A program made the translations under genes and the position numbers. The notes under the pieces were generated by a model. That model had not been told where the DNA came from. It saw only the letters and a list, made by a program, of their open reading frames with translations, and searched no databases. Source: Tetramitus jugosus (taxonomy: Eukaryota; Protista; Heterolobosea). From it: a DNA stretch of 64,000 nt. Location of the stretch: assembly GCA_937625935.1 (NCBI GenBank), contig OW569350.1, forward strand, positions 62,001-126,000, read 5' to 3'. This document shows positions 1,725-48,757 of the stretch, in pieces (within the stretch, counting starts at the first letter, position 1; each line of letters opens with the position of its first letter).

Positions 1725-1806
1725 TGCATGCGGTGAGATTTGAACTCACGCATCCGGAGATATCCGAACTTGAGTCGGACGCCTTAGACCACTCGGCCAC
1801 GCATGC
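1725..1806 (-). tRNA. tRNA-Leu(CAA), intronless
   Basis: The reverse complement folds as a cloverleaf: acceptor GCATGCG/CGCATGC+A, D arm TGGCCGAGTGGTCTAAGGC, anticodon arm TCCGA-CT CAA GT-TCGGA, long variable arm, T arm GTGAG-TTCAAAT-CTCAC. A T4 run lies just downstream. Confidence 0.95.
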
Positions 1807-2845: not shown

Positions 2846-5800
2846 TTACTTTTGCTTAATGAGAGAGACAAGGAACTTGATGCCCTTGATAAAGTCCTTG
2901 GATTGTTCCCAATGCTCCTTCGTTATCTTTTGTACAACATTGTTAGCGTGCTTAATGTCGTTGTTATCGATGGCGTTGGCCAGTGCAGCCAGATCATGTC
3001 CCAAACCAACACCAATTCGTCCCTCATTCATCAGCTTGGACAAGGCACTCAGACCGTTCTCGATCATACGCTTCTTGGTCTTGTCTACAGCTGATACCTC
3101 TCCAGAGAAGATCTTTTCTGATGAAGCCTGCAGAGTGTTGAATGCATTGGACAGATCAACATCTGACACTGGTGTGCCACTGCTGGATGGTGATGAAACT
3201 GACTCAGCTTTCTCAGATACACTGGTTGTTGGAGGCTCACTGATTGGAGGCTGAGAGACTGGTGGTGGTGAAATTGGATTCATTGGTGGCTGAGTGAAAG
3301 TAGGTGTTCCCACGGAACCTGTGGTTGGAGGTGCGCCGAATGATGGCATTCCAAATTGTTGGCTTGGTTGAGGAGAGAAACTTGGCTGCATAAATCCTCC
3401 TGATGTAGTTGGTGGTGGCAGCTGTTGTTGTGACACTTGTTGAATTGGTTGTCTGAATCCAGTTGGAGGAGCACTTGCCGAGTATGGAACATTCATGCCA
3501 CTCATTGGAGAAACACCAGATACTGCAGGTTGGTTTGTAGGTGGAGGTCCCATTGTTGGTACATTCGTCATAGCAGGAGCGGAGCCATAAGGGGCGTTCA
3601 TAGGAGGGAATCCTGTATTTGTGTGTTGTGGTGGCACACCCATTGGCACAGATGAAATTGGTTGGACAAAAGTGCCTGTTGGTTGAATAGGTCGCAATCC
3701 ACTAACAGTTGCTGAAGTAGGTGGAGGAGCACGACCAGTTTGTGGACCAACCTGTCTTGGTTGTTGTTGCTTTGCCAACTCCTTGATCTGGAATGGAGGT
3801 CTAGGAGAAGGACCAAATGGTTGAGACAGTGAATTGTAGATTCTGTATCTGAGAGCAGCAGTTTCTTCTGATTCAGTAACGACACCCATGTTCAAATAGT
3901 GAAGAGCAACAGGTAGCAGATTTGATCCTTGCAATGACAAAATTTGTGCATATTGAGCATAGAATCTTGCAAGTTCAGGTTGAGATTGGATCAATGATTC
4001 GTCATTGGTGTTTGTTGCAATCTTGAAAATGGTTACCTTTTCAATCAGAGACAACAGGTCTTCGCGAGGCAATGGTGCAACAGTTTCTTCTGCTTCTTCC
4101 TCTTCGTCTTCGTTCTTTGGAGGAACAACACTGGATACCCAGATAGATACAGTCTTTTCTACATTACCAGACAACATGTAGCACAAGGTAGCAGCGCTAA
4201 TGTCATTCTTTTCGTCCTCTAATCTAATGGCTAATCGGTTGCACAAATTCTTGAACAAAGTGCTGTCTTGGCATGATGCAATAACTGATAGTGCATCCTT
4301 CCAATTGTCCAAATCAGCTTCATCAACAACATTATCGAATTTGTTGTTAAGCATCGATGCAACAATCTTCATGTCCTTACGGTCTTGAAGGGAGAAATAA
4401 GTTTGTCTTGTCTTCTCCCACAAATCAGCACCACCGCAGGTAGAGAGAATCAAAGCATCAGCCAATCTTCCAGCAGCAATAGCAATATTGACAGCATCCT
4501 CATAGTTTTGAACAAGAACGGACTTGCGAATCAATTCGTCAACACTTGATGTATCCAAATCAATCTTGCTAGTAATATGCGCATCGCTCACAGTTCCGTC
4601 CTCAAGTGGTTCAGCAGATAATTTTTCTTGAACTTGCTCACTGACGACATTCTTGTCCAAACCAAGATACTTCAACAAAGTAGAAGATCGATCAGATGCG
4701 AATAGCACCTTCATCACGCTCCAAACGTCGCTATCGGTTCGCGCCTTCTTTTCACAGTACTCTTCCAATTGCTTACTCTTCTGAGCGTTCTCCAGTTCGA
4801 GAGCTCTTTCTGATGTCTCTGGTTCAGAACCGACACTGTACACAGTCACAGTCTTACCAGTCTTTGCATCCTTACCGAATGTGACAAGTCGACCACCAAA
4901 ACCAAAAACAGCTCCAGCTGGTCTTTGCAACCATTTTGGAGCAGTCTTGAAGACATTCTTTTGAATGACAGGCTTGGATTCAAGACCGAGAGCATCACGA
5001 GCATACTCGCCAACATCAGCAGTTGCACTGGAATCCTGGAGTGAAATGATCGAAATCTTTCCATCGTAGGAGCTAGTAGACAAGATGGATGGTCTCTTGG
5101 ACCACTGAACATCATACATCCAATTGTTGGATGTTGGGAGTTCACCCAGAACCTCACCAGAGTTTGGATTCCAGATCAATGTTCTGTTATCCTTACCACA
5201 TGAAACCAACAGATTACTATCATCTGGGCACCATGAAACAGATAAGATACCCTTGGTGTGACCAACATATTCTCTGACTGGAGCATAAGCCTTTCTCAAG
5301 TCCCACAATTCAATGACTGGAGTATTGTCATCCTCTGAGGCCGTAACCAACTGAGTGGAGAGCTCTGGGTTCCATGCGAGTGATGAGTATCGCTTCTTAC
5401 TCTGAGAGTTGGTAAATGGTACAATTGGTCGCTTTTGCTTCAAATCCCAGACAACAGAGGTACCATTGTAGGATGTTGTTGCCAAAATCTATTCAGTGAC
5501 AATGATGGAACGAAAATGAACATGTCTGGGGTTAGTGACTGATCCCGGGATGAAAAAAAAACACGAACGGGAGGTAAAAAATTCTTGGTACATACATATT
5601 CGTAGACTCTATTCCATGCCAATGCACTAATGGATTGGTTTTGATGAGGATTCTTACCTCCTAATGTTACAGGAGTAGGGGCAGAAGGGTTCTTCAAATT
5701 CCAAATGTACAACTATATATCGAGTTTCAAAAATTGGCAAAAAAACAAGGAACAAATGTGTGTTAATGATGACCATTCTCGCACTTGCATGAAGAAGAAA

Positions 5801-43443: not shown

Positions 43444-43477
43444 AGAGCCTTTCCGTGCCGTGGTCCACACTACATAA
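43444..43477 (-). pseudogene. Unit A: 34-bp remnant of the element ORF 5' region
   Basis: agagcctttccgtgccgtggtccacactacataa matches 48394-48427 at 32/34 positions. Confidence 0.7.
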
Positions 43478-44511
43478 TTTTTTTTAAAATACAACATTGC
43501 GGTTGCTCTTTTTATTGACTTTCGTATACATTAACCAACGTTCGCAGAGACTTGCCCCTGGTTATCTGTACATTATTTCCCAATGAGGCTCGTAAACGTC
43601 ATTGCTTCTGTTTCTCTTTGGTTGACGTGAACAGTGGATGGAGGGTCGTGAGACATCATTCGTGAAGGCTACTGACTTCTTCATCCTTTAGCACCAATCC
43701 ATCTTTGAAGGTATTCTTTGCTGGTTTTCTTGATTGGTCTTGGCGACAATTTGCCTTCCCTCAGTCGCCAATGGTCAACCAGATATCGATAAACTCGGTC
43801 GTGCAACTTCTAGCTCCACTACCTTTTGGCAGCTCAATTGTTCAGATCACCCAGTGTGATTCGAGTGCTCCACTTGTTGTCATTGAGTTGTGGACTCCAA
43901 ATCTCCTTTTCGGAGTCGTCATCCACATCCACAATGATTGGTTCATCCTCAATCAAACCATACCTTTTGCGTGCAGCAGCCAGCGCCAATGCAGCAATTT
44001 CCTTTTTCACTCTAGCGAACACTGGAGAAGTGGCATTCATTTGCTCCAGGATTTGCCGGTTCTCAGCACTGAGCTGTACAACAGACACTGATGGCAGTGT
44101 TGCTACAGTCCTCTGTTCTTCTACCTCCACTAGCTCAGGAGTAGTCTCCATCCTGGCAGTGGCTTGGGCAACTTCTGGTTCCGGCATTGGAACCGGTTTG
44201 TTGCCCCCTTGACGCTTTGTCTTTCCTAATTCCTTGGTGAGTTCTGTGACCTGTCGACGCAGTCCGTCAACCACCGTAAGCAGCTCCTCATACATCTGGT
44301 CAAATTCTTGTTGACAGCTTTGAGAGGATCATGTGGCCTCTCGACGTATCGAGTGACCGTGGCTTTTACACTGTTCTCTCCACTGCTCGTGCATAGGTTT
44401 CATCGACCATGACCACGAATGTAGTGTCACGTTTCTTCAGCACACTGGCTACCTTCTCAGGTCCCAGTTGCTTGATGTCGTCCCGTGACATGTGATTCCG
44501 TTTTTTCTGAG
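43478..44511 (-). pseudogene. Unit B: decayed element copy
   Basis: T8 tail at 43478-43485 and ATG at 44491. A 366-bp deletion relative to unit E lies between GACATGT direct repeats, and there are frameshifts. Residual ORF 43834-44295 is homologous to unit E. Confidence 0.8.
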
Positions 44512-44527
44512 TTTTGATCAATTGATC

Positions 44528-44618
44528 TTTTTTTTAATACAACACGAGGTTGCTCTTTATTACTCTGTCCTACTTTCTTTTAGTTTCTCGGATCGTCCTT
44601 GTGACGCTCGCAGAGCCA
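44528..44618 (-). mobile_element. Unit B': ~90-bp 5'-truncated element (3' end only)
   Basis: Minus strand reads ...AATAAAGAGCAACCTCGTGTTGTATT(A)8, similar to the 3' end of unit B. Bounded by GATCAATTGATC (44516) and TTTTGATCAA (44619). Confidence 0.7.
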
Positions 44619-44628
44619 TTTTGATCAA

Positions 44629-45736
44629 TTTTATTTTATTTTTCCATACAACCATGTGTGCTTGCGCAGCAAGCACACGATTGCTCATTTATTGACTTGT
44701 TTTGTGTGTGACGACCCGTAGGGCGTCATTCACTCTTCTTCTCTTGTTGTCCCCGACGGTGCACCTACAGGTTGGAAGAATCACTCTGGTGAGTGTTTTG
44801 GTTGATGCCCTTCATCAAAGAGCGTAACCTTGTAGTAGGACCGTCGATGGACACAGAGCCATCTGTTGTTGTTTTCTTGTTTTGGGCCTTGTTGCTCATC
44901 AGATCACCCAGTGTGATCCTAGCACTCCTCTTCTTGTTGTCATTGAGTTGTGGGTTCTGAATCTCCTTTTCGGAGTCATCATCCACATCCACAATGACTG
45001 GTTCGTCCTCAGTCAAACCATACCTTTTGCGTGCAGCAGCCAGTGCCAATGCAGCAATTTCCTTCTTCACTCTTGCAAACACTGGAGAAGTGGCATTCAC
45101 ATGCTCCAGGGTTTGCCGATTTTCAGCGCTGAGCTGTACAACAGGCACTGTTGGCAGTGTAGTTGCATTCCTTTGTTCTTCTGCCTCCATTAGACCAGGA
45201 ACAGTACTTTGTGCAACTTCTGGTTCCGGTATCGGAACCGGTTTGTTGCTCTCTTGACCCTTTGTCTTTGTCAATTCCTTGGTGAGTTCTGTGACCTGTC
45301 GACGCAGTCCGTCAACCACCGTCAGCAGCTCCTCGTACATCTTCGTCAACCTCTTGTTGACGGCCTTGAGAGGATCATGTGGTCTCTCGACGTATCGAGT
45401 GACCGTGGTCTTTACCTTGTTCTCTCCGCTGAGCACTGCTCATGCATAGGTTTCATCACCCATGACCACGAAAGCAGTGTCACGCTTCTTGAGCACACTG
45501 GCAACCTTCTCAGGTCCCAGTAGCTTCTTGATGTCGTCCACTGACATGTTCTTCATGCCATGGACGACCACCTTTCTTGTACAATCAACACTGCGCTTGG
45601 GTGCAGCAGTGCTGTTGCCTCTCTGTCACTTGGCCTAGAGCCTTTCCGTGCAGTGGTCCACACTGCATAACGGCTGTTGCCGTATTCCTTCACCAAATTT
45701 GTTGAATCACCAGACATGTGATGCCGTTTTTTCTGC
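44629..45736 (-). pseudogene. Unit C: pseudogenised element copy
   Basis: ATG at 45717 with the same N-terminus as unit E. A 196-bp frameshifting deletion (equivalent to 48181-48376) and an in-frame CGG->TGA stop near 45441 break the ORF. The tail is degraded (ttttattttattttt). The 3' region is near-identical to unit E. Confidence 0.85.
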
Positions 45737-45888
45737 TTTTTTTGATCAATTGATCTTTTTTTTTTAATACAACAAATGGTGCTCACGCACCACGTTGCGG
45801 AACTTTTATTTTTCTTTTGCGTGAGAGCAGGCTTGCCTGCTCTCAATTGTCTAACATGATGTGATGCTTGCCCAGTGGAGTGGCAGGC

Positions 45889-47133
45889 CTACGCAACAGG
45901 ATTCATTCTCTTCTTGGAATGTTGTTTTGATCCCTTCTTCAGGGATTCGTTGCGAGGGCCTCCACTACCATCTGGAGCACCACTGGTGAGGTCAGATGGC
46001 TCCGTAGTCCTAGCCAGTTGGTAGGACCTACGGAGAGCACCTGACTTGATACTGGCCAACCTGGCCGGGATCTTGTTGGCAGCAGTGTCACCAACGGTGA
46101 CACGTGCTGATCGCTTCTTGTGTTCGTTGAGTTGGGGACTCTGTAACTCACAGTCGGGGTTACTGAGATCCAACTCAACTGGATCTTCTTCGGTGGTTGT
46201 GCTTCTTGCACGGTCCACCATGATTGCTCGGGCAGCAATCTCTTTCTTGACTTTCTTGAACACCTCGGAGGTGTTCAATACTAGCTCGAGGATTGCTCTG
46301 TTACGAGCATCCTCATCAATGGTGTTGTTGGTTGGCTCTTGGGTGACCGTAGTTGGAGTGGCGGGATGGGACTCCGGCATGATCGACTCCCGATCATCGG
46401 TCGTAGACGGAGTCGAAGGTTCGAATTCGGAGATTCGCTCCGGCGTCCTTGGAGACGGGGATGCGAGGGGGATCCGATTGACGGAAGCCATATCTTTTAA
46501 CACACTGACTTGGTGGCGCAGGTCGTCCACCACAGCCAGTAGCTCTTGGTACATCTTGGTCAGCCTCTTACTGACAGCCTTGACCGGATCACGTGGGCGT
46601 GGAAGGAAGCGCTTTGCTTCCACCTCCACTGGCATGGATTGGACGTTTCGAAGCAAAGCTTCGGCATACGTTTCGGACTCCATCACAACAAAGGCGGTGT
46701 CGTGCTTCTTGAGCACGTTCTTGACCTTTGTTGTGCCAAGCATGGCCTTGATGTCGTCCTCCGTCTTACCTTTGACACCGTGGAGGACGACCTTCTTGGC
46801 ACAATCTACGTTGTGCTTGAGTGCTGCCTTGCAGCCACTCATCTTCTTGTTGCGGTTGAAGGACTCAACAAATGGGTAAATGTTGTCATCAACAACAGTT
46901 ACCCACGCAACAAACCTCTTGGGGCCCTTCTTGATGACTTGGACCCTGGTGAGCAAATCACCAAAATCCAAGCCAATCTTCTTGGCCAAGGCAGCCTTGG
47001 GAGAGTCATCACACTTTCCAGTGATGATGACCTCTTTGCTGCTTGGCGCAGTTCCTCTTGGTGCTGTGGTCCACACAGCATAGCGTGGATTCTCATACTC
47101 ACGAACAACAGGGGTGTGTGTTCGTTTTTTCAT
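45889..47133 (-). CDS. Unit D ORF: divergent intact RRM-RRM-coiled-coil protein (element 45756-47138)
   Basis: 414 aa. Shares RYAVWTT, EV.ITG, RVQVIK, RFVAWVTV, VDC..KVV.HG, DTAFVVM, RP.DP.KAV.KRLTKMY.ELL.VVD.LR.QV, VKKEIAA and PQLN..KKRSAR.T.GD with unit E. T10 tail at 45756-45765. Confidence 0.85.
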   Translation of the reverse strand: MKKRTHTPVVREYENPRYAVWTTAPRGTAPSSKEVIITGKCDDSPKAALAKKIGLDFGDLLTRVQVIKKGPKRFVAWVTVVDDNIYPFVESFNRNKKMSGCKAALKHNVDCAKKVVLHGVKGKTEDDIKAMLGTTKVKNVLKKHDTAFVVMESETYAEALLRNVQSMPVEVEAKRFLPRPRDPVKAVSKRLTKMYQELLAVVDDLRHQVSVLKDMASVNRIPLASPSPRTPERISEFEPSTPSTTDDRESIMPESHPATPTTVTQEPTNNTIDEDARNRAILELVLNTSEVFKKVKKEIAARAIMVDRARSTTTEEDPVELDLSNPDCELQSPQLNEHKKRSARVTVGDTAANKIPARLASIKSGALRRSYQLARTTEPSDLTSGAPDGSGGPRNESLKKGSKQHSKKRMNPVA

Positions 47134-47307
47134 CGGCGTTTTTTTTTGATCAATTGATCAATTTTTTTTTTTTTTTTTTTTTTGTTCCATACAACCATGT
47201 GTGCTTGCTGCGCAAGCACACGATTGCTCATTTATTGACTTGTTTTGTGAGTGACGACCCGTAGGGCGTCATTCACTCTTCTTCTCTTGTTGTCCCCGAC
47301 GGTGCAT

Positions 47308-48474
47308 CTACAGGTTGGAAGAATCACTCTGGTGAGTGGTTTGGTTGATGCCCTTCATCAAAGAGCGTAACCTTGTAGTAGGACCGTCGATGGACACAGA
47401 GCCATCTGTTGTTGTTTTCTTGTTTTGGGCCTTGTTGCTCATCAGATCACCCAGTGTGATCCTAGCACTCCTCTTCTTGTTGTCATTGAGTTGTGGGTTC
47501 TGAATCTCCTTTTCGGAGTCATCATCCACATCCACAATGACTGGTTCGTCCTCAGTCAAACCATACCTTTTGTGTGCAGCAGCAAGTGCCAATGCAGCAA
47601 TTTCCTTTTTCACTTTGGCGAACACTGGAGAAGTGGCATTCACTTGCTCCAGAATTTGCCGGTTCTCAGCACTGAGCTGTACAACAGGCACTGATGGCAG
47701 TGGTGTTGCTACAGTCCTCTGTTCTTCTGCCTCCACTAGCTCAGGAGTAGTCTCCATCCTAGCAGTGGCTTGGGCAACTTCTTGCTCCGGCATTGGAACC
47801 GGTTTGTTGCCCCCTTGACCCTTTGTCTTTCCCAATTCCTTGGTGAGTTCTGTGACCTGTCGACGCAGTGCGTCAACCACCGTCAGCAGCTCCTCGTACA
47901 TCTTCGTCAACCTCTTGTTGACAGCCTTGAGAGGATCATGTGGTCTCTCGACGTATCGAGTGACCGTGGCCTTGACCTTGTTCTCTCCACTGAGCACTGC
48001 CCGTGCATAGGTTTCATCACCCATGACCACGAAAGCAGTGTCACGCTTCTTGAGCACACTGGTAACCTTCTCAGGCCCCAGTAGCTTCTTGATGTCGTCC
48101 ACTGACATGTTCTTCATGCCATGGACGACCACCTTTCTTGTGCAATCAACACTGCGCTTGGGTGCAGCAGTGCTGTTGCCAATCCTCCTCTCTTTGTTGA
48201 ACAACTCAACAAAGTCATAGATGCGGTCACCCTTGACCGTCACCCATGCAACAAAGCGTTGCTGGCCTTTCCTCTTGATGACCTGGACTCGGTTGAGCCA
48301 GTCACCAAACTCCTCTCCTATCTTTCTTGCCAAAGATGACTGAGAGACACCATTACCGTTGCCAGTAATGACGACCTCTCTGTCACTTGGCCTAGAGCCT
48401 TTCCGTGCAGTGGTCCACACTGCATAACGGCTGTTGCCGTATTCCTTCACCAAATTTGTTGAATCACCAGACAT
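47308..48474 (-). CDS. Unit E ORF: intact RRM-RRM-coiled-coil protein (element 47162-48495)
   Basis: 388 aa. RNP2/RNP1-like KVVVHGM...KRDTAFVVM.DETYARAVL, followed by a heptad coiled coil. Uninterrupted T22 tail at 47162-47183. Flanked by a GATCAATTGATCAA direct repeat (47148-47161 / 48501-48514). Confidence 0.88.
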   Translation of the reverse strand: MSGDSTNLVKEYGNSRYAVWTTARKGSRPSDREVVITGNGNGVSQSSLARKIGEEFGDWLNRVQVIKRKGQQRFVAWVTVKGDRIYDFVELFNKERRIGNSTAAPKRSVDCTRKVVVHGMKNMSVDDIKKLLGPEKVTSVLKKRDTAFVVMGDETYARAVLSGENKVKATVTRYVERPHDPLKAVNKRLTKMYEELLTVVDALRRQVTELTKELGKTKGQGGNKPVPMPEQEVAQATARMETTPELVEAEEQRTVATPLPSVPVVQLSAENRQILEQVNATSPVFAKVKKEIAALALAAAHKRYGLTEDEPVIVDVDDDSEKEIQNPQLNDNKKRSARITLGDLMSNKAQNKKTTTDGSVSIDGPTTRLRSLMKGINQTTHQSDSSNL

Positions 48475-48495
48475 GTGATTCCGTTTTTTTCTGCG

Positions 48496-48517
48496 TTTTT
48501 GATCAATTGATCAAAAA
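48496..48517. repeat. Perfect 22-bp palindrome TTTTTGATCAATTGATCAAAAA, putative insertion target
   Basis: Read directly. Its core recurs at the unit junctions; it lies 26-47 bp upstream of the tRNA-Tyr +1. Confidence 0.85.
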
Positions 48518-48542
48518 TCAAGTCGAAGTATCGAAAATATCT

Positions 48543-48615
48543 CCTCTGATAGCTCAGATGGTAGAGCATGAGACTGTAGATCTTGTGGTCGCGTGTTCGA
48601 GTCACGCTCGGAGGA
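48543..48615 (+). tRNA. tRNA-Tyr(GTA), intronless
   Basis: Acceptor CCTCTGA/TCGGAGG with C1-G72 and A73 (eukaryotic Tyr identity), D arm GCTC/GAGC, anticodon loop CT GTA GA, T arm GCGTG-TTCGAGT-CACGC. T5 terminator at 48618-48622. Confidence 0.93.
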
Positions 48616-48757
48616 ACTTTTTGGTTTTGTCTTGCTGACTGGAACTCCTTGTTCCATAAACGACTCTAAAAATAAGTTCGAGATCTGTGAAAAACAAGTT
48701 CTAGGTGCTCGGTCAAAATCCAATCACATTACTACCTTTTTTACAACAAAGCAAGAC

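Follow-up and report, generated by a model that had tools for sequence, protein, structure and literature searches.

Upstream of a tRNA-Tyr gene of Tetramitus jugosus (Heterolobosea), we found a head-to-tail array of poly(A) retroposons, all in one orientation on the minus strand, at positions 43444-48517 of the window (the whole stretch of 64,000 nucleotides of contig OW569350.1 that was analyzed). The sequence, the repeat analysis and BLAST searches against the two intact units confirmed that the stack is real, and the array far exceeds chance. We consider it very likely that it arose from at least seven separate retrotransposition events at this single site, by non-LTR retroposons directed to RNA polymerase III (Pol III) genes. 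This is a new example, in a non-dictyostelid, of the tRNA-gene targeting known from the TRE5 elements of Dictyostelium. From the tRNA gene outward, the features are the following.

48542-48617, plus strand: tRNA-Tyr gene, anticodon GTA (ARAGORN), the Pol III gene that defines the insertion site.
48501-48514, minus strand: target-site copy TTGATCAATTGATC nearest the tRNA gene, with edges at 26 nt (left) and 40 nt (right) from the tRNA 5' end.
47162-48500, minus strand: unit E, a full-length single-ORF retroposon (BLAST, sequence); terminal branch 0.0087.
47148-47161, minus strand: second target copy TTGATCAATTGATC (sequence).
45756-47147, minus strand: unit D, a full-length single-ORF retroposon of the second family (BLAST, sequence); terminal branch 0.0073.
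45744-45755, minus strand: third target copy GATCAATTGATC (sequence).
44629-45743, minus strand: unit C, E-type but of a different subfamily (BLAST); terminal branch 0.0217.
44619-44628, minus strand: shortened target copy TTGATC (44623-44628), then AAAA (read from the sequence).
44528-44618, minus strand: unit B', a 91-nt 5'-truncated LINE 3' end with an A8 tail at 44528-44535 (LINE identity).
44516-44527, minus strand: fifth target copy GATCAATTGATC (sequence).
43842-44515, minus strand: unit B, an old E-type copy (BLAST); terminal branch 0.0700.
43478-43831, minus strand: a decayed 354-nt 3' end belonging to a second LINE family, 5'-truncated and with an A8 tail at 43478-43485 (LINE identity).
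43444-43477, minus strand: remnant A, a 34-nt piece of the E-type ORF and the outermost trace (repeat analysis, family D9).

The 5' ends of all units are directed toward the tRNA gene, and the polarized stack described in a sequence-only reading of this DNA was borne out. That reading had distinguished at least two subfamilies; we count four families in the stack, namely the E type, the D type and two kinds of LINE 3' end. In unit C, unit positions ~131-326 are deleted, there is one stop, the longest ORF spans 191 aa and the tail is interrupted (44629-44643). The shortened target copy beyond it appears to have lost one TTGATCAA repeat unit through slippage, judging from its letters. Unit B' is 5'-truncated, as had been described, and is not a relative of D: it matches the 3' end of the RT-encoding LINE in L036 at 90% identity and that in L021 at 87%. 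Unit B is indeed a deleted E-type copy. It keeps the 5' end and the ATG, is missing most of the initial ~390 nt (the first RRM-like segment), and is truncated at unit position ~1064, with the last ~300 nt missing; it is tailless, with a longest ORF of 151 aa. The T8 tail formerly assigned to it belongs to the separate 5'-truncated LINE fragment at 43478-43831, which shows 88% and 83% identity to the L021 LINE 3' region following an ORF2 C-terminus. Remnant A corresponds to E unit positions 79-112, and both its ends are missing.

All the hallmarks of target-primed reverse transcription (TPRT) that had been proposed are present: poly(A), locus-specific duplications and 5' truncation. The same locus-specific 12-14 bp duplication (TTGATCAATTGATC) stands between units at five junctions, and three elements in L056 are all flanked by one 16-bp sequence: the target is regenerated at each insertion. 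Head-to-tail units with one short repeat between them, a possible recombination substrate, might also have come from a single ancestral unit, through tandem duplication, unequal crossing-over or gene conversion. However, four families alternate in the stack, and E and D share only about 47-50% amino acid identity, with saturated dS. Units E, C and B of the window fall in three clades of the E tree, each nearer to copies on other contigs, and E, D, C and B' each have their own poly(A) directly before a duplication copy. Simple tandem duplication, already discounted from the sequence, is ruled out by the four stacked families and the own tail on each full-length unit, and we give very little credence to any derivation from a single ancestral unit.

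Separate insertions would be mimicked if part of the stack were an assembly artefact, with copies from different loci joined at poly(A) or duplication junctions. The units are multi-copy, their junctions are of low complexity, and the public short contigs all break at poly(A) tracts, none of them crossing a unit-to-unit junction. Nevertheless, the five junctions with a target copy share a duplication found at no other examined locus, and similar stacks occur on at least 10 other contigs. Moreover, the unique B-to-LINE junction (43618-43982) recurs without change in another sample of the organism, and a groundwater metagenome carries it with a single difference. A misjoined stack is thus improbable, though somewhat less so than duplication of one unit.

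Separate insertion events at a Pol III gene are also what we found in the rest of the genome. It contains at least 110 matches to E/D units, 35 of them full-length and nearly all open, together with numerous 5'-truncated copies; a profile search for E/D-like units gave 511 first-look candidates, of which only the best were scored. Tabulating distance and orientation genome-wide, as had been suggested as a check on the tRNA association, placed all the full-length E copies examined at Pol III genes (30/30, counting five that adjoin a tail). Twenty-one are upstream of a tRNA gene, with 17 different anticodons and a median distance of 43 bp. Their divergent orientation is constant and their distances to the tRNA 5' end span 32-46 bp, except for a single copy at 5 bp; for the copy in the window the distance is 40-41 bp. 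Another three lie ~40 bp upstream of Rfam-confirmed 5S genes, one lies at a tRNA-like sequence, and five sit directly behind another retroposon's tail. The element 5' end faces the gene in 21/21 tRNA-associated and 3/3 5S-associated copies, and every unit in the 12 stacks examined holds this orientation. The suspected TRE5-like placement and orientation upstream of tRNA genes was therefore found well beyond the window. Tails of E copies measure 9-38 A. Among the 24 full-length E copies neither of whose ends adjoins another tail, 23 are accompanied by a locus-specific 11-21 bp duplication. Recent activity is indicated by two identical E copies on separate contigs.

The palindrome beside the tRNA gene is present, but it is the local target rather than part of the element, and it differs at every other locus. 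Since the five window junctions use exactly the palindromic site GATCAATTGATC, one could propose sequence-specific elements whose endonuclease recognizes it, with the tRNA gene being incidental. Against this, flanks and duplications are unrelated at the 29 other full-length E copies, which have in common their fixed spacing and orientation relative to a tRNA or 5S gene; recognition of the palindrome is accordingly hard to believe. The sequence between the tRNA gene and the element also differs at all other loci compared. The Pol III gene, not the DNA sequence, defines the target. An R1/R2-type sequence-specific element was rejected, as target sequences differ at every locus.

Units E and D are single-ORF elements of 1.36-1.39 kb, and reverse transcriptase and endonuclease domains were absent from both in Pfam. 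Unit E has a ~26-nt A-rich 5' UTR, a 388-aa ORF (47308-48474), a ~125-nt 3' UTR with hairpins and a GGTTGTATGGAAC end, and a pure A22 tail (47162-47183). Unit D has a 414-aa ORF (45889-47133), its own 3' UTR with a TGTTGTATT end, and an A10 tail (45756-45765). The complete unit, conserved from the 5' end to the tail, measures ~1.36 kb in at least 30 E copies and ~1.39 kb in at least eight full-length D copies. With dN/dS values of 0.21-0.39 among E subfamilies and 0.26 between E and D, the ORF is, as judged by its substitution pattern, under purifying selection. The predicted fold (model mean pLDDT 46) is beta-alpha-beta-beta-alpha-beta twice, then a helix at 181-219, and its top PDB matches are all tandem-RRM proteins. 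With low confidence, this model suggests a protein with two RRM-like domains followed by a long helix, plus a variable tail. A SINE identity was rejected, given units of 1.36-1.39 kb with a selected protein and no tRNA-like head.

Intact ORFs, purifying selection and an RRM-like predicted fold are also what a tandem family of ordinary host RRM-protein genes with A-rich intergenic spacers would display. Host genes would not, however, be expected to be dispersed at Pol III genes in at least 110 copies, two of them identical on different contigs, or to show poly(A), 5' truncation and locus-specific duplications. Furthermore, a search among 5.8 billion proteins retrieved only three metagenomic copies of the same element as relatives. 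We regard the host-gene explanation as the least credible of those considered here, and E and D as retroposons.

Regarding the age of the insertions, the earlier interpretation of the stack as an insertion-by-insertion chronological record is supported. The proposed comparison of tree and array position gave the shorter terminal branch to the gene-proximal copy in 13/14 informative adjacent pairs (p=0.0009), and in 11/11 pairs outside the window. In four stacks (L043, L050, L051 and L053), the initial 8-17 nt of the distal E form part of the proximal D's duplication, which means that E was already in place when D inserted. The ORF is intact in the proximal unit of 8/12 stacks, in the second unit of 3/12, and in none farther out. 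Older copies lie farther from the gene genome-wide, as had been claimed for this array. Within the window, divergence does not put E and D in order (0.0087 vs. 0.0073). The D copies differ mainly at synonymous sites (dN/dS 0.02-0.14), so that part of each terminal branch predates the insertion and branch length is an imperfect clock. Tail length does not follow age.

This order very likely has a simple mechanism behind it. The insertion site is measured from the gene, so a new insert enters the gene-proximal duplication copy, and each insertion recreates the substrate at an unchanged distance while older inserts are displaced outward. The stack accordingly runs from newest to oldest with distance from the tRNA gene. 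We propose that the first nucleotides of the unit contain an internal promoter from which it is transcribed, and that the E/D protein binds its own RNA in cis. The protein may dock on the TFIIIB/TFIIIC/Pol III complex, by analogy with what has been proposed for TRE5-A ORF1p, while the endonuclease and reverse transcriptase would be supplied in trans by the APE-RT LINEs of the genome. The outer stack, with the tailless B and with remnant A lacking both ends, would require later deletions.

The closest parallel is that of TRE5-A.1 and TRE5-A.2 of Dictyostelium. TRE5 elements integrate 40-54 bp upstream of tRNA genes; for 5S genes the upstream distance is 37-41 bp (PMC5911963). TRE5-A.2 of Dictyostelium discoideum is a non-autonomous ORF1-only derivative mobilized in trans, and de novo TRE5-A insertions were found at most already-occupied tRNA genes, where the authors infer tandems (PMC5391098). 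The distance upstream of tRNA and 5S genes, the 5' end toward the gene, the ORF1-only elements and the tandems at occupied genes are all shared with the elements described here. A chronological stack is to be expected from position-specific integration and has been published before as one of its consequences. The likeness is claimed without common descent, since no sequence relationship to TRE5-A was detected by the ORF1 search, which retrieved only copies of the same element, or by the ORF2 search. The TRE5-A A-module promoter has no counterpart in the ~26-nt 5' UTR of our elements. Unlike TRE5-A.2, there are here two ORF1-only lineages that have diverged to about 47-50% amino acid identity with both ORFs kept open, and the candidates scored included no parent LINE whose ORF1 matches. 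In vitro work cited in PMC5006619 describes contacts of the TRE5-A ORF1 protein with TFIIIB subunits.

Other retroelements reach the same neighborhood. NLTR-B of Polysphondylium (Heterostelium) pallidum, a non-LTR element with no relationship to TREs, inserts 39-64 bp upstream of tRNA genes and has been published as the case in which this preference evolved convergently (PMC5006619, PMC5911963). One LINE family of the genome studied here (L031) likewise carries an RNase H domain after the RT; E and D have no reverse transcriptase. Ty3 and Ty1 of Saccharomyces cerevisiae integrate safely upstream of tRNA genes by using the Pol III machinery as a landmark (PMC5911963), but these are LTR elements with integrase, at other distances and without poly(A) or TPRT marks. 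Spaller et al. (2016) left the origin of TRE-type targeting undetermined, and a non-dictyostelid case bears on convergence versus antiquity.

These findings leave unchanged the known picture of how such elements work. They provide a well-resolved natural example, from a compact genome, of retroelements that land safely at Pol III genes. By one protein, the host is distant from its nearest named relatives: its closest named adenosine deaminase homologues share less than 51% identity. As insertions stack in order, a relative chronology of family and subfamily activity can be read at each occupied tRNA gene without a molecular clock. The commonest elements encode only a tandem-RRM ORF1-type protein, selected through deep divergence; it is therefore the leading candidate for the targeting factor and is readily accessible to experiments.

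Half-a-LINE (HAL1) elements of mammals are likewise non-autonomous LINE derivatives that carry ORF1 only and use ORF2p in trans. HAL1 is dispersed, untargeted and a recognizable deletion derivative of L1; the elements here are position-specific, and among the scored candidates no parent was seen. Potential partners are nevertheless at hand: APE-RT ORF2s of about 1150-1330 aa are numerous in the genome, and LINE fragments occupy the same stacks as E and D. Among the matches listed, for which the best candidates were scored, no ORF2 N-terminus is directly preceded by an E/D-like match. The ORF2 search returned unnamed matches only, at no more than 31% identity, with no named TRE among them. A 3' module of hairpin, AATAAA, GAGCAAC, GTTGTAT and poly(A) is common to E, D and at least six LINE 3' ends, and is also found in B'. 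We tentatively suggest, as a possibility that we rate well below even, that E and D form an old self-sustaining ORF1-only lineage rather than recent LINE deletion products. Their own tandem-RRM protein would target Pol III genes, several LINE families would be parasitized through the conserved 3' module, and the system would have arisen outside Dictyostelia. If so, TRE5-like targeting would have had a further independent origin or would be much older than dictyostelids.

At the structural level, sequence reading, BLAST with the two intact units, repeat finding and ORF listing confirmed the stack of poly(A) retroposon-like units proposed upstream of tRNA-Tyr by the sequence-only reading, and corrected two of its units. 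On the minus strand, moving away from the tRNA gene, the units lie head-to-tail with an A-run closing each.

Features of the retroposon stack, in order from the tRNA gene (window positions)
48542–48617, plus strand: tRNA-Tyr(GTA)
47162–48500, minus strand: E, with an A-rich 5′ UTR of ~26 nt, a 388-aa ORF, a 3′ UTR of ~125 nt and a pure A22 tail
45756–47147, minus strand: D, with a 414-aa ORF, an A10 tail and ~47–50% amino acid identity to E
44629–45743, minus strand: C, E-type, with an internal deletion, a stop and an interrupted tail
44528–44618, minus strand: B′, 91 nt plus A8, matching an RT-encoding LINE 3′ end at 90% identity
43842–44515, minus strand: B, E-type, most of the first ~390 nt and the last ~300 nt lost, tail absent
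43478–43831, minus strand: LINE fragment behind B, 354 nt with an A8 end, decayed and 5′-truncated, 88% identical to another LINE 3′ end
43444–43477, minus strand: remnant A, a 34-nt piece of an E-type ORF

Four gaps (tRNA/E, E/D, D/C, and B′/B) contain the local target sequence TTGATCAATTGATC, either whole or as its last 12 nt, and the C/B′ gap holds only half a copy, TTGATC. B′ had been taken for a relative of D, which its match to the RT-encoding LINE at locus L036 does not bear out. The T8 tail credited to B belongs to a separate 5′-truncated LINE 3′ end (matched at L021), leaving B tailless. Since B′ and the fragment behind B are both LINE-derived, the stack comprises four families and must reflect at least seven insertions. 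The proposed distinction between D and the E-type units was kept, and the two LINE 3′ ends come on top of the two subfamilies first named.

B (43832–43850) and an old E copy in L050 (~3860–3875) are cut at nearly the same unit nucleotide (~1064–1067, GGTGATCTGATGA). Both join sequence resembling their own local duplication, which also has TGAT. This suggests that the 3′ end and tail of these two copies may have been lost via microhomology, or by internal priming.

At the genome level, we searched the 26.35-Mb, 56-contig assembly in six frames with the E protein and obtained at least 110 matches, with 35 full-length copies (91–100% identity, nearly all open) and ~25 D-type ones. A profile search gave 511 first-look candidates. 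The E and D matches formed 87 clusters, and 10-kb context was taken for 14 regions, among which no LINE complete with its ORF1 was seen. For the insertion targets, we analyzed 30 full-length E copies and their 1.5-kb flanks. They share a conserved 5′ end (an A-run followed by ACGCAGAAAAAAACGGAATCAC and the ATG), and the sequence immediately upstream is unlike between all loci. Thus, the palindrome next to the tRNA gene is local target sequence and not a constituent of the element. In 24 of the 30 copies neither end lies against the tail of another retroposon, and 23 of these 24 repeat 11–21 bp of their upstream sequence directly after the tail, which measures 9–38 A across E copies.

Tabulating distance and orientation to tRNA genes bore out the association that had been suspected. 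The 5′ end of a tRNA gene lies 32–46 bp from the element 5′ end in 21 of the 30 copies (median 43), except for one outlier at 5 bp in L011, where only 8 bp are repeated after the tail. All 21 are divergent to the tRNA, and 17 different anticodons are represented. By Rfam, three further copies have a 5S rRNA gene ~40 bp away, with the copy upstream of it, and one is placed at a tRNA-like sequence; five directly follow the poly(A) of another retroposon, being second in a stack. Therefore, targeting of Pol III genes accounts for all 30 full-length E copies. D is a discrete 1.39-kb unit, full-length at a minimum of eight loci and in the same position as E. Minimal E copies also follow the rule: an extremely 5′-truncated 3′ end of 83 nt (L051:7864–7946), oriented as usual, lies ~52 bp upstream of tRNA-Leu(AAG).

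The second tRNA gene of the window, tRNA-Leu(CAA) (1725–1806, minus strand), has an upstream site free of insertion, and a host ORF, Tim17/22-like by eye, begins ~140 bp from it (1725–1950). Some tRNA genes are unoccupied, perhaps where an insertion would strike a neighboring promoter. Two further ideas about the target site were rejected. Family-specific distances, hinted at by L043, L052, and L054 (about −53 to −55 for D, about −41 to −43 for E), failed in the window, where both E and D inserted at −40. An A-rich 5′ end of the insert recreating the first-strand nick site was discarded as well: the tail directly adjoins the duplication at its left edge, and on the primer strand that edge lacks T-richness.

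If the site is set by its distance from the gene, each new insert would fall between the gene and the earlier insert. We assessed this chronology in 12 stacks, namely the window, L043, L047, L050–L056, L009, and L014. Terminal branches came from maximum-likelihood trees, one type comprising 40 E-type copies and the other 14 D-type copies. Across all stacks, the gene-proximal unit had the shorter terminal branch in 13 of the 14 adjacent pairs that were informative, and one pair was tied (p = 0.0009, one-sided binomial); with the window excluded, this was so in 11 of 11 pairs. A nested-duplication test, independent of any clock, was also applied. In L043, L050, L051, and L053, the duplication of the proximal D includes the first 8–17 nt of the 5′ end of the distal E; therefore, E predates D at these loci. 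The two duplications of L052, and likewise those of L054, have a few bases in common, as expected with the proximal element second. In L056, one 16-bp duplication is common to three elements (a LINE fragment, D, and E), which resembles the situation in the window. Intact ORFs were found in the proximal unit of 8 of the 12 stacks, in the second unit of 3, and in none farther out. Branch lengths, nested duplications, and ORF integrity thus agree with the proposed age order by distance from the tRNA gene, and the interpretation of ordered, repeated insertion is supported.

Within the window itself the order was recovered in part. The terminal branches of C (0.0217) and B (0.0700) are longer than those of E (0.0087) and D (0.0073), and divergence does not set the order of E versus D. 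Full-length D copies (window 45892–47133, L045, L051, and L052) differ by 11–14 synonymous versus 1–6 non-synonymous changes (dN/dS 0.02–0.14). Since these differences are mostly synonymous, part of each branch predates insertion and belongs to active source lineages, and most differences between D copies date from such selected lineages rather than from the time after insertion. Poly(A) length was tried as an age proxy and rejected, as proximal and distal tail lengths overlap fully and show no trend with position.

The likeness to Dictyostelium TRE5 that had been pointed out, based on upstream position and orientation, held at the 21 tRNA and three 5S loci. TRE5 elements insert 40–54 bp upstream of tRNA genes and 37–41 bp upstream of 5S genes, with the element 5′ end toward the gene (PMC5911963), and TRE5-A.2 is an ORF1-only, non-autonomous form mobilised in trans (PMC5391098). 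E and D are similar in four respects: tRNA distance, 5S distance, orientation, and the ORF1-only form. They thus belong to a kind already known, non-LTR retroposons that target Pol III genes and have ORF1-only partners, and the ordered stack is an expected and already published consequence of such targeting. NLTR-B of P. pallidum demonstrates that the preference for sites upstream of tRNA genes evolved more than once (PMC5006619). Because neither an ORF1 search among 5.8 billion proteins nor an ORF2 search found a sequence link to TRE5, the likeness is one of behavior and we do not claim descent from the TRE5 lineage. Unlike TRE5, E and D have a very short 5′ UTR and a protein that, in a low-confidence model, is of the tandem-RRM type. 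They also form two ORF1-only lineages, both still open, with synonymous sites saturated between them. A parent LINE with an ORF1 matching E/D, a further difference, was absent among the matches listed, a weak negative with only the best candidates scored.

Regarding the E/D protein, Pfam gave no significant match, with RT and endonuclease absent, and a PDB sequence search gave no usable one. The only relatives among 5.8 billion proteins were three copies of this element family from metagenomes, and the ESM Atlas offered just a weak RRM lead (0.77). The ORF evolves under purifying selection, with dN/dS of 0.21–0.39 between E subfamilies, 0.26 for E versus D, and the strongest selection in the first 215 residues (0.11–0.17). 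An AlphaFold model from a 10-row alignment was of low confidence (mean pLDDT 46; 60–71 over most of residues 31–140). It presented the RRM strand-helix order at 33–105, most of a second RRM at 114–161, and then a helix at 181–219 and two conserved helices at 265–304. All top Foldseek matches in the PDB were tandem-RRM proteins (for example HuR, hnRNP A1 UP1, U2AF65, and nucleolin; E about 1e-5). From the secondary-structure order and these consistent matches, we tentatively suggest a tandem-RRM fold, which would fit an ORF1-type RNA-binding protein. In full-length E (48470–48500) and D (47133–47147), ~14–26 nt precede the ATG, with a common A-run and then ACGC; we assume transcription from an internal promoter.

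Many APE-RT ORF2s of ~1150–1330 aa, from several families, are present in the assembly, some with RNase H or zf-RVT motifs; their RT is similar to R2 and L1 enzymes. Their 5′-truncated fragments populate the same stacks as E and D. The 3′ ends of E, of D, and of at least six LINEs are built alike: a GC-rich hairpin comes first and is followed by AATAAA, GAGCAAC, (G)GTTGTAT, and poly(A). Through this common module, E and D may take ORF2p in trans from LINEs, and their own protein could bind RNA in cis and dock onto the Pol III complex.

Two E copies on different contigs, L006 (C4:56844–58178) and L007 (C21:453385–454731), are identical over ~1335 nt, including an 8-nt duplication in the 3′ hairpin, one being at a tRNA-Leu gene and the other at a 5S gene. 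Their identity suggests that a single source gave rise to both very recently. Together with the zero-length terminal branches of several E copies, it shows that the E family is active, or was until very recently.

We compared contigs from four runs: two of the organism, one groundwater metagenome, and one rhizosphere metagenome. The contigs of all four were short and ended at the poly(A) tracts of the stack. None of them spanned a unit-to-unit junction, and no empty or shorter allele was seen among them. The stack flanks and the unique B-to-LINE junction were recovered in public contigs, the junction being exact in the second sample of the organism and carrying one difference in the groundwater metagenome. 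A 1393-nt contig of the rhizosphere metagenome equals one whole D unit. Soil, rhizosphere, groundwater, and freshwater are the origins of the runs in which the sequence occurs. The host adenosine deaminase reaches no more than 50% identity to its best named homologues, which are from Naegleria, Acrasis, and Heterostelium.

An old E copy in L056 is interrupted by a 195-bp insertion (4896–5090). Its terminal inverted repeats are 19 bp long and perfect (GGGAGCGTCCAGATATTAT), and its target duplication is the 3-bp TCA, so that it resembles a MITE-type DNA transposon; further copies were not seen in the window or the locus regions examined. Finally, the 3′ UTR hairpin of E-type copies has a 9-bp stem (GTGTGCTTG / CAAGCACAC) and a 5-nt loop (window 47199–47221 versus 44656–44678; loci L001–L030), and is shortened in a younger subfamily. 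Copies differ in the loop, which reads either CGCAG or the reverse complement of this, CTGCG, an inversion of the kind produced by template switching inside a hairpin.
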